A stretch of DNA of 64,000 nt from Lepidodermella squamata (lineage: Eukaryota > Animalia > Gastrotricha): assembly GCA_047495785.1 (NCBI GenBank), contig JBLDXI010000029.1, forward strand, positions 186,001-250,000, given 5' to 3'. The translations under genes were made by a program, and so were the position numbers. Shown here one piece after another: positions 37,491 to 40,418 of the stretch. How positions within the stretch are numbered: position 1 is the first letter of the stretch; each line of letters starts with the position of its first letter. A model generated the notes under the pieces. That model saw only the letters and a program-made list of their open reading frames with translations. It had not been told where the DNA came from and did not search any database.

Positions 37491-40418
37491 ATGGCTACAT
37501 TGTTGTTTGTGATTTCAGCACTGCTTATCCCGGCGGTAGTTGCCCAGGGCGACTATCAATGCGACGACGCCTCCTGGGCTCGGTACAAGCGTGATTTTTC
37601 AAAATACTACACCGGGTCCACGGATGTTTCGCGCAAATCACTGTTTTGCGAAAATATCCGGAAAATCAACAACCACAACGCGCAGTACGGGTCAACATTT
37701 ACCTATCGCCTTGCCGTTGGGCCTCTAACTGACCAGGATTTCTCTGAAAACTCAGCCGCCCTGCGCGGGCTCTTTGGCTTTGTCCCTGGTGGTAACTTGC
37801 CGCCATCCTCGCCTTCAGGGAGGTATTCGGAAATTGAAGTGCCCATACCCGAATCGAAAGACTGGCGGTCAGAGGGCAAAGTTACGCCCGTTCGCGATCA
37901 GAGAGGCTGCGGCTCTTGCTGGGCTTTTGCGGCTATAGGTTTGTCATCAATGTAGATTGTCAATAGTACATATCAGGATATTTTTACAATTAGTTACTTA
38001 TCTGTCATGTTATGTAAGCTATCCATGTCACATTTTACAGGCGCTGTCGAATCAAAACTGCTGATAAGAGACAGCCGAAACGCAGATTTATCTGAACAAG
38101 AGCTTGTCGATTGCAGCAGACCTCAAGGCAACTTGGGCTGCAATGGTGGCACTCCGTACCGGGCTTTCAACTACATGGCACAAGATGGAGTTGGTGATGA
38201 AGCATCTTATCCCTATACTATGACAGACGGAACATGCCGCCGCAGCTCTTCAGTTGCCACGAAACTCGGCAAAGTCGCCACGTCAGTTAGCTTATCTACC
38301 GAATTCGAAATGCAAAGAGCTGTCGCGTTGAGCGGACCAGTAACTGTGGCAATTCATTCGTCCTTCAATTTTGTCAACATCAGAAGAGGGAACACCGAGG
38401 TCTTCAACTCGGATCCGGAGTGTGCCGGAAAGAAACCTAATCATGGTGTTCTAGTTGTTGGCTACGGAACAGACGCCATTACTCGCCAACCGTATTGGAT
38501 TATCAAAAATAGCTGGGGAACAGGTTGGGCTGACGGCGGCTTCATCAAATTTGGGCGCGGCTCGAATCTATGCCAAATTGAAACCCAAATGGTGTACCCC
38601 GAGGTCAGTTTATCAATATGTATGTTGTGCGCCTATAGAGGATCTAAGCTTATACGGTATAGGCTTAAGCCTATACGGGATAAGCGACATTTTAAACTTT
38701 AAACTGTCATAGCGGCCAAACCGTGAGAGTGACTATCGATCATCATATATCAATCGATTGCTGTAATCAAGGGCTATCGATTGGTGCCAAATCGAAGTCC
38801 ACGCGGCACACTCATGGTCAAGTTTTGGGCAATAAAAGCGAATTTTCCGCATTTTTTTAACTTTGAAGGTAAAAAAAATATTTCCAAGTTTTCCGCGCGG
38901 AATTCGATTTGGCACCGATCGACAGCCCTTGATTACAGCAATCGATTGATATATGATGATCGATAGTCACCCTCACGGTTTGGCCATTATTTTGGTTAAA
39001 AATAATGCTCATACCCTAAAGGCTTAAATACCTCATAGGCGTACATGTACATAGAAACATTTCCTCAGTGAGGATAAACCTTTTACTTCATCCAACTGCA
39101 AAATAAGATGAAGTCTTATTATTAAGTTTCATTGGTAGAAGATAACATACATTTAGGATAATATGTAGTCTCCAAAATTCAGGTAAAATTAGTCGTTAAT
39201 AGTAATACGAAATCGACTAAATCAGGCAATAATTTTCAATTTTTCAAGAATCTCATTGTTACGAGTTACGACCAAAGTCCGAGAGCGACCACGTGCGCGC
39301 GCGCGTCGATTTGGAGCCCACCATACCTGGGTTGACACCTATGAGCCGAAGCCCGAGAAAGGTTTTTGATAAGAGAGATCGCCAAAGAGATCGCATCCCG
39401 GTCGACCAGAGCGCGACGTGGTCGCTTTCGGACTTGGGTCGTAACATCATGGTTCTTCGTTCTGATGTGAGTCAGGATCAGGCAAAGAACCGCTTTTATT
39501 TCTTCAAGACTGTCTGGAATATTTGACACCTCCCTCTTGTAATAAATCGGTCGTGTAATAAATTATTAGCCGACTGAAGCGTGGGAAAATTATGGGCATA
39601 TTACGATTGAAATTTGGCAGCTTGCTGCAGCCGCGTCATTTGTTCCACCGCCCCCGCCCCCGTCCACATCAGCTGTTGATAGAACACGAACAACGACAAC
39701 AACAACAACAACAACAACAACAACAACAACAACAACAACAATAACAACACCAACATTTTTAAGATCAACATCCATTGCCGCCAGGTCTAATTTGTTACTC
39801 GACTTGATAGACTTGTTCGCCGGCGTTCGTCTTTCAAACGCCCACACCTTGTCTCAATCAAGCGGTATGAGGTCGTTAGTTTTAGCTACCGTTGCAGCCA
39901 CGAGACTTCGATACAGCAGCTACTCTGACCAGTGCGGGGACATTGTAAACACGATGGAGGCGAAAGCTGGCTATAGCTATGGTCGGTGGTTGTGCGCAGT
40001 CGGCGAAAGCGTCTACGCGTCGATAGACTACGTCGGTGATAACTCGTTTGTCGTGGACACAACAAATGGCCAATCAATGACGTACTTTGTTATTCAGCAG
40101 CAATGCACAACATCGGCAGGACAAGTTGACCTGCCTCGCTTTTCAACAGGCTCGCTTTACGATTATCGCATCTTTAGCTCTGATACCAATTACCGTTACG
40201 GTCAAGCTGAAATAATGGCTAGCGCGGCTTCAACATTGACATTGCCTGCCGTTACTGGGACTATTTATTCGAATTTGAAGCGATACGGCGGCTCGTGGAC
40301 GGTAATAGCTGGCGATATTAGCGCGGTCGTCTCCAAGTACTCGTCTCCTTACTACGTCTGGATAAATAAACAACAACAAAAGAACAACGTTATAAGCTTT
40401 CTAAATGCTGCATGTTGA
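37491..40418 (+). CDS. Cathepsin L-like (C1A) protease with intact triad, Pro/Thr linker and C-terminal tandem LC8-like domain (602 aa)
   Basis: Exons 37491-37938, 38041-38603, 39621-40418, phase-consistent. Signal peptide; I29 prodomain (D..R..F..N..I..HN); [38 protein letters not shown]. Exon 3 encodes poly-Pro, (ACA)n poly-Thr and a ~185-aa domain shared with the paralog. Confidence 0.92.
38714..38985. mobile_element. Foldback MITE with 93-bp inverted arms in cathepsin intron 2, inside more diverged outer arms (~38616-39054)
   Basis: 38714-38806 versus 38893-38985: about 5 mismatches in 93 bp. This explains the two mirror-image spurious ORFs in the track. Confidence 0.85.

Follow-up and report, generated by a model that had tools for sequence, protein, structure and literature searches.

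Two cathepsin L-type genes of Lepidodermella squamata encode, C-terminal to the protease domain, a shared tail module built of two LC8-like units in tandem. Both genes lie in the 64,000-nucleotide (nt) stretch of DNA analyzed here (the window, G000:C29:186001-250000), which is part of a 121-Mb, 151-contig assembly that was searched as a whole. Each has three exons on the plus strand, with gene A at 37491-40418 and gene B at 47411-49240. We consider it likely that their products are secretory cathepsin-L-type proteins with a tandem LC8-fold tail, which would form a pseudo-dimer, bind a partner peptide, and thereby aim the protease. LC8 is otherwise regarded as a dimeric hub inside cells that grips disordered peptides, and the fusion to a protease is the new part of the finding.

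The shared tail and its joining to the protease

Genes A and B both encode an I29 propeptide and a Peptidase_C1 domain above the Pfam cut-off (papain family C1A, cathepsin L-like). In gene A, exon 1 matches Inhibitor_I29 (8.2e-8) and Peptidase_C1 (5.4e-11), and exon 2 matches Peptidase_C1 (2.2e-48) over profile positions 32-219 of 220. With exons 1 and 2 taken together, the Peptidase_C1 matches of both genes reach profile position 219/220 directly 5' of the exon 2 donor. Because the second introns of both are phase 0 with GT..AG borders, exon 3 continues the protease frame. These in-phase open frames agree with the original prediction, made from the letters of the window, that both paralogs run past the C1A end through a Pro/Thr linker into a common domain. 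The closest relative of each gene is the other one, with 59% identity in the protease domain, and both N-termini, as read from the translations, are hydrophobic, signal-type and end in AQ. Gene A keeps the Cys25-His159-Asn175 triad (CGSCW, NHG and NSWG motifs). Gene B keeps His and Asn and fails the triad at Cys25, where it has Ser (TCA, 47813-47815; C-A-S-S-W vs C-G-S-C-W). Judged from its sequence, paralog B could be either a pseudo-protease, acting as a non-catalytic binder, or a variant with a Ser nucleophile of the kind known from silicateins.

The module comprises about 200 amino acids (aa) after the Pro/Thr linker and is made of two divergent sub-repeats, whose profiles match each other in hhalign at 96% (E 3.8e-9). 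The exon 3 products of A and B share 37% identity over 184 residues (E 2e-35), with about 68 invariant positions that include all four Cys (DQC, WxC, QxC and terminal C) and the YGG-W-V-G core of each repeat. The position of exon 3, its second copy at 48524-49240, the two sub-repeats and the four-Cys pattern had all been predicted, and the frames, the alignment and the repeat-to-repeat comparison showed each to be correct. The genome has at least 50 C1A matches, and of these A and B alone bear the module.

Splicing of the tail to the protease was assessed with run X1, which consists of public Logan contigs from a differently labelled organism and is 95-99% identical to the window. X1 was taken as transcriptome-like because its contigs are without introns and the introns of gene A are almost without coverage. 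A single 949-nt X1 contig covers 37647-37936, 38039-38600 and 39618-39679, skipping 102 and 1017 nt, and links all three exons of gene A without a shift of frame. The proposed junction 38603/39621 is therefore crossed by a spliced contig, and exon 3 of gene A is not a separate gene, as it would be had it been transcribed apart from the protease exons. This supports the fusion of cathepsin L and the tandem LC8-like module in one mRNA. A second X1 contig covers 39759-40500 at a depth of 27 versus 25, like exons 1 and 2. The second joint was placed in X1 three bases to the left of the GT..AG reading (38604-39620), and the frame is kept either way. Of these three bases a single one differs, G at 38601 versus C at 39618, so that a canonical splice plus one X1 substitution is the simplest reading. 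Contigs of both X1 and a DNA run, X2, break at the ACA (poly-Thr) repeat 39680-39758, the length of which may vary between strains.

Relationship of the module to LC8

Exons were searched and folded separately. Dynein_light (PF01221) was the first weak Pfam match of each paralog, independently and at the same place. Compared by hhalign with the genome's two canonical LC8 genes, repeat 1 scored 94.4% (E 9e-8) and repeat 2 scored 91.0% (E 1.1e-6), and the controls, reversed LC8 and 20 column-shuffled LC8 profiles, reached at most 0.6%. A profile search of all PDB sequences returned LC8 chains in each of the top 20 places (best E 0.0013). The LC8 relationship first proposed for both sub-repeats is thus supported by profile-profile comparison and by the PDB profile search, as well as by the model topology and exhaustive fold search described below. 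The accompanying suggestion of a Ground-like domain is not supported, as neither module matched PF04155 with E as high as 1 allowed. The genome's best Ground-like score, 20 bits where the cut-off is 35.4, falls on an N-terminal unit of a gene on contig C1; a literature search found no paper on a link between Ground-like domains and LC8.

Searching the genome with the module led to a cluster of three tandem genes on contig C1 (C1:1143257-1150859, minus strand, loci L004-L008). The product of each begins with one LC8-like unit or two, followed by a Thr-rich linker and the four-Cys double module. Units of the C1 genes score above the Pfam Dynein_light cut-off of 29.1 (53.9, 42.8 and 56.5 bits), and one Dynein_light stretch of L006 falls within repeat 1 of the module. 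Further single exons of the repeat 2 type were found at C1:1159745, C1:1161636 and C17:1925686. An exhaustive search of 1.84 billion protein representatives yielded one true relative, P0001, a secreted, non-protease chain of 283 aa from eukaryotic metagenome contigs that consists of a signal peptide, a Thr linker and the module. The four Cys are invariant in A, B, the C1 paralogs L005 and L006, and P0001, and the repeat exons of the third C1 gene keep whichever of the four fall inside them. A profile built from the cathepsin modules alone matched the separately aligned C1/P0001 modules in hhalign at 97.3% (E 1.9e-11) over 162 collinear columns, from which we conclude that the cathepsin tail is a diverged member of the C1 family, a lineage-specific group of tandem LC8-like proteins.

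An AlphaFold2 (AF2) model of the module was calculated with a 10-row alignment (A4; predicted local distance difference test, pLDDT, 61.7; predicted template-modeling score, pTM, 0.62), and a single-sequence model (pLDDT 37) was unusable. The aligned model shows strand, helix, helix and four strands, twice (residues 3-98 and 118-200), and strand 2-3 runs unbroken for 14 residues in both repeats. When it was compared by VIA-align with 48,161 PDB representatives, ranks 1-11 were all LC8, dynein-light-chain (DLC)-like, Tda2 or Tctex. The best alignments covered 85/89 residues with a root-mean-square deviation (rmsd) of 1.9-2.0 Å, all on repeat 1 (model residues 1-100); for repeat 2 the LC8 fold rests on element order and profile only. 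In the ESM-Atlas, the module matched a Dynein_light cluster (rmsd 1.8 Å over 85 residues) and, over its residues 10-203, a 222-aa Tctex-1 family model (template-modeling score, TM, 0.59; 173 residues). An LC8-type fold for each repeat is therefore supported at the level of the model. Packing of the two repeats into an LC8-type pseudo-dimer is only suggested, by the pTM of 0.62 and, indirectly, by the Tctex-1 match of both halves at TM 0.59. Of the check that had been proposed with AlphaFold and Foldseek, the LC8-type topology, present twice, and the LC8-family fold matches stood, the latter by VIA-align. The Foldseek half did not, since the whole two-repeat model searched against PDB gave double hot-dog, EspG and taspase rows that are meaningless (TM 0.12-0.34, rmsd 11-19 Å).

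No protease with an LC8-like tail was found in public protein collections, where longer fusions are reachable only through the length-independent representative search, and no paper with a cathepsin/dynein-light-chain fusion was found in the literature search. An apparent absence of this architecture among described C1A proteases, as originally claimed, is supported to that extent. Word-indexed protein searches (A3, A1 and the P0001 region) returned nothing beyond the query itself, and a metagenome locus scan was blank. The other match in the representative search, P0002, is a 2323-aa Pro-rich repeat protein hit nine times over 38 residues, and was rejected as spurious. Leads from a language-model atlas all scored below 0.9 and pointed to unnamed nematode clusters; they were not used.

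Gene features and neighbors

Features of genes A and B in the window, with positions counted from its first letter.
Feature	Position	Strand	Description
Gene A exon 1	37491..37938	+	Signal peptide, I29 propeptide, start of C1A with CGSCW catalytic-Cys motif; open reading frame and translation
Gene A intron 1	37939-38040	+	X1 contig joint 37936->38039, 102 nt skipped; GT..AG with the cut two places to the right
Gene A exon 2	38041..38603	+	Remaining C1A domain, His and Asn kept; stops at the normal C1A C-terminus
Gene A intron 2	38604..39620	+	1017 nt, phase 0, GT..AG; skipped by X1 contig
Gene A exon 3, linker	39621..39806	+	Pro run, then about 20 Thr (ACA repeat, 39680-39758)
Gene A module repeat 1, LC8-like	39807..40106	+	Order strand, helix, helix, four strands; bears three of the four invariant Cys
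Gene A module repeat 2, LC8-like	40152..40418	+	Closes with the fourth invariant Cys and stop codon
Gene B exon 1	47411..47834	+	Signal peptide, I29 propeptide, start of C1A; Ser at the catalytic-Cys position (47813-47815)
Gene B exon 2	47914..48473	+	Remaining C1A domain; Pfam 1.5e-43; BLASTP vs gene A 59% identity, 6e-80
Gene B intron 2	48474-48523	+	50 nt, phase 0, GT..AG
Gene B exon 3	48524..49240	+	Short linker and tandem LC8-like module (48617-49237); profile search of the same genome, E 3.9e-81

Intron 2 of gene A holds two inverted-repeat elements resembling miniature inverted-repeat transposable elements, at 38698-39001 (115-nt arms, 88%) and 39265-39445 (30-nt arms, 93%). Their depth in X2 is very high, which identifies them as high-copy repeats, and they account for an intron of 1017 nt in gene A versus 50 nt in gene B. 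Two unrelated genes on the minus strand separate A from B (41719-43202 and 44601-45974). One encodes a Cys-rich protein that has a membrane span at its C-terminus, and the other is a long C2H2-type zinc-finger open reading frame of 457 aa.

Among the other cathepsins of the genome with long open reading frames, L028, L030 and L031 have their extra length N-terminal to the protease and end at the normal C1A C-terminus; a fourth, L029, runs into an intron, and its C-terminal end was not seen. In the cathepsin L genes L030 (C31:917000-919200) and L031 (C34:934300-936600), long mucin-like inserts rich in Thr separate the propeptide from the mature domain.

Function, alternative explanations and known systems

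The signal peptide, poly-Thr stalk and invariant Cys indicate, on sequence grounds, an extracellular or luminal location for the products of A and B. The secretory context that had been proposed for the fusion is upheld by these features together with the I29 propeptide, and it argues against a cytosolic role of the module. In the mechanism we propose, the zymogen would enter the secretory pathway, and the Thr run, probably O-glycosylated, would act as a stalk. In the LC8 dimer the units are paired via a swapped strand 3 and present two peptide grooves. The two LC8-like halves of the module would pack like the chains of that dimer and, outside the cytosol, be held in place by disulfides. By analogy with LC8, the pseudo-dimer could then bind an extended peptide by strand addition, thereby docking the protease onto a substrate, a matrix or a receptor. 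A bolder version, which we offer tentatively as a possibility, is that the LC8 strand-capture fold has moved to the extracellular space, where a disulfide-fixed, single-chain pseudo-dimer serves as a modular docking exosite on a mucin-like stalk, selecting substrates or anchoring the protease, with B as a non-catalytic partner or decoy.

Several observations weigh against an LC8-fold tail working in this way. The cathepsin modules score below the Pfam Dynein_light gathering score (13.2 and 13.6 bits vs 29.1), and a profile of A and B only is weak against LC8 (hhalign 18% and 8%). For these two reasons the LC8 link is transitive and runs via intermediates. In LC8, the groove residues F62, Y65, T67 and H68 hold TQT peptides. 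All four positions are replaced in both repeats in the hhalign alignment, and the ligand motif of the module must therefore differ from TQT. The best VIA-align score (Z 7.6) is within reach of unrelated models and the model is of middling confidence, so the fold search counts because its top rows are unanimous and coverage is near-complete, not because of Z alone. On the transcript side, that X1 is an RNA run is a guess, and the ACA repeat at 39680-39758 is bridged by no contig, the X1 junction contig stopping at 39679. Protein, representative and metagenome searches found no orthologue outside near-identical material. Finally, between exon 3 and its X1 allele there are 18 non-synonymous changes and 9 synonymous ones, a ratio of non-synonymous to synonymous rates (dN/dS) of ~0.6, which implies fast evolution or weak constraint.

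It is highly improbable that the LC8 resemblance is convergent or spurious, with the module being a small alpha/beta domain unrelated to LC8. Such a view draws on the low identity of the module to LC8 (11-19%), the sub-threshold Pfam scores of the cathepsin modules, and the double hot-dog folds placed first by whole-model Foldseek. However, those rows have TM 0.14-0.20 and rmsd ~14-18 Å and hence carry no weight, and four independent lines, namely Pfam on the paralogues, PDB profile matches, hhalign with controls and the exhaustive structural search, point to LC8 alone. The dN/dS value, the lack of orthologues in database searches and the transposable element insertions in the preceding intron would fit a recent, weakly constrained appendage without specific function, exon-shuffled from the C1-type family and drifting neutrally. 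We think this very unlikely, because an open frame of about 200 aa has been kept in both paralogs despite their divergence to 37% identity, with its ~68 invariant positions including the four Cys and the core of each repeat, and because exon 3 is spliced in at a depth equal to that of the protease exons.

The main rival to the exosite reading is a maturation, sorting or solubility domain, clipped at the Thr/Pro linker as in plant RD21-type granulin proteases and dispensable for catalysis. The linker is long, flexible and probably accessible to proteases, and there is a precedent in Trypanosoma cruzi cruzipain, whose C-terminal extension is not needed for activity (PMC8440672). The tail has also diverged faster than the protease domain, both between A and B (37% vs 59% identity) and between gene A and its X1 allele (3.8% vs ~1.2% differences). 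Against this, the module also ends non-protease LC8-like proteins, so that it has a role independent of a protease zymogen, and it has been retained on paralog B, where Ser stands in place of the catalytic Cys. Both points argue for a binding role independent of catalysis, and we regard the maturation or sorting domain as a serious competitor but a rather improbable one. If the docking reading is true, it would represent a new way to give a papain-type enzyme an exosite and a new habitat for the LC8 fold. The module is small and self-contained, and this genome joins it to several partners, so that the rules of its ligand choice could be mapped and it might be reused as a binding scaffold.

Compared with LC8 (PF01221; PDB 3BRI and 6ZYW chain I), the module has the same element order in each repeat, superposes at 1.9-2.2 Å over 85-87 residues, and keeps the W-x-C / G core of strand 2; its two units would stand side by side as in the LC8 dimer. 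It differs in having both units in one chain, behind a signal peptide and fused to a protease, in its four invariant Cys, and in scoring under the family cut-off with TQT-groove residues that are not conserved. The C1 genes and P0001 share with A and B the C-terminal double module, the four Cys and the preceding Thr-rich linker. In front of the module the C1 proteins have extra LC8-like units and P0001 has just its signal peptide and linker, and none of them has a protease.

DLC-like fusions are known only from trematode EF-hand proteins and have been called unique to trematodes (PMC12347358). The EF-hand/DLC-like proteins FhCaBP and CsTAL3 (PMC12347358, PMC5431922) resemble A and B in carrying the DLC-like domain as the C-terminal part of a fusion, and chains of this type rank 5, 7 and 8 in the VIA-align fold search. 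Unlike A and B, they have one DLC-like domain that dimerizes between chains and a calmodulin-like partner, with no protease, tandem or conserved Cys set. Among proteases, the cruzipain-extension and granulin families were absent from the Pfam, PDB and fold searches of the module, and no direct comparison with their sequences was made. Cruzipain (PMC8440672) and triticain-alpha/RD21 (PMC5535888) share with A and B the order of signal peptide, propeptide, C1A domain, flexible linker and Cys-containing C-terminal domain. In contrast to both, the domain added in A and B is predicted to have an LC8-type fold, which would add a third kind of C-terminal extension to the C1A proteases, beside the trypanosomatid and plant (granulin) kinds.

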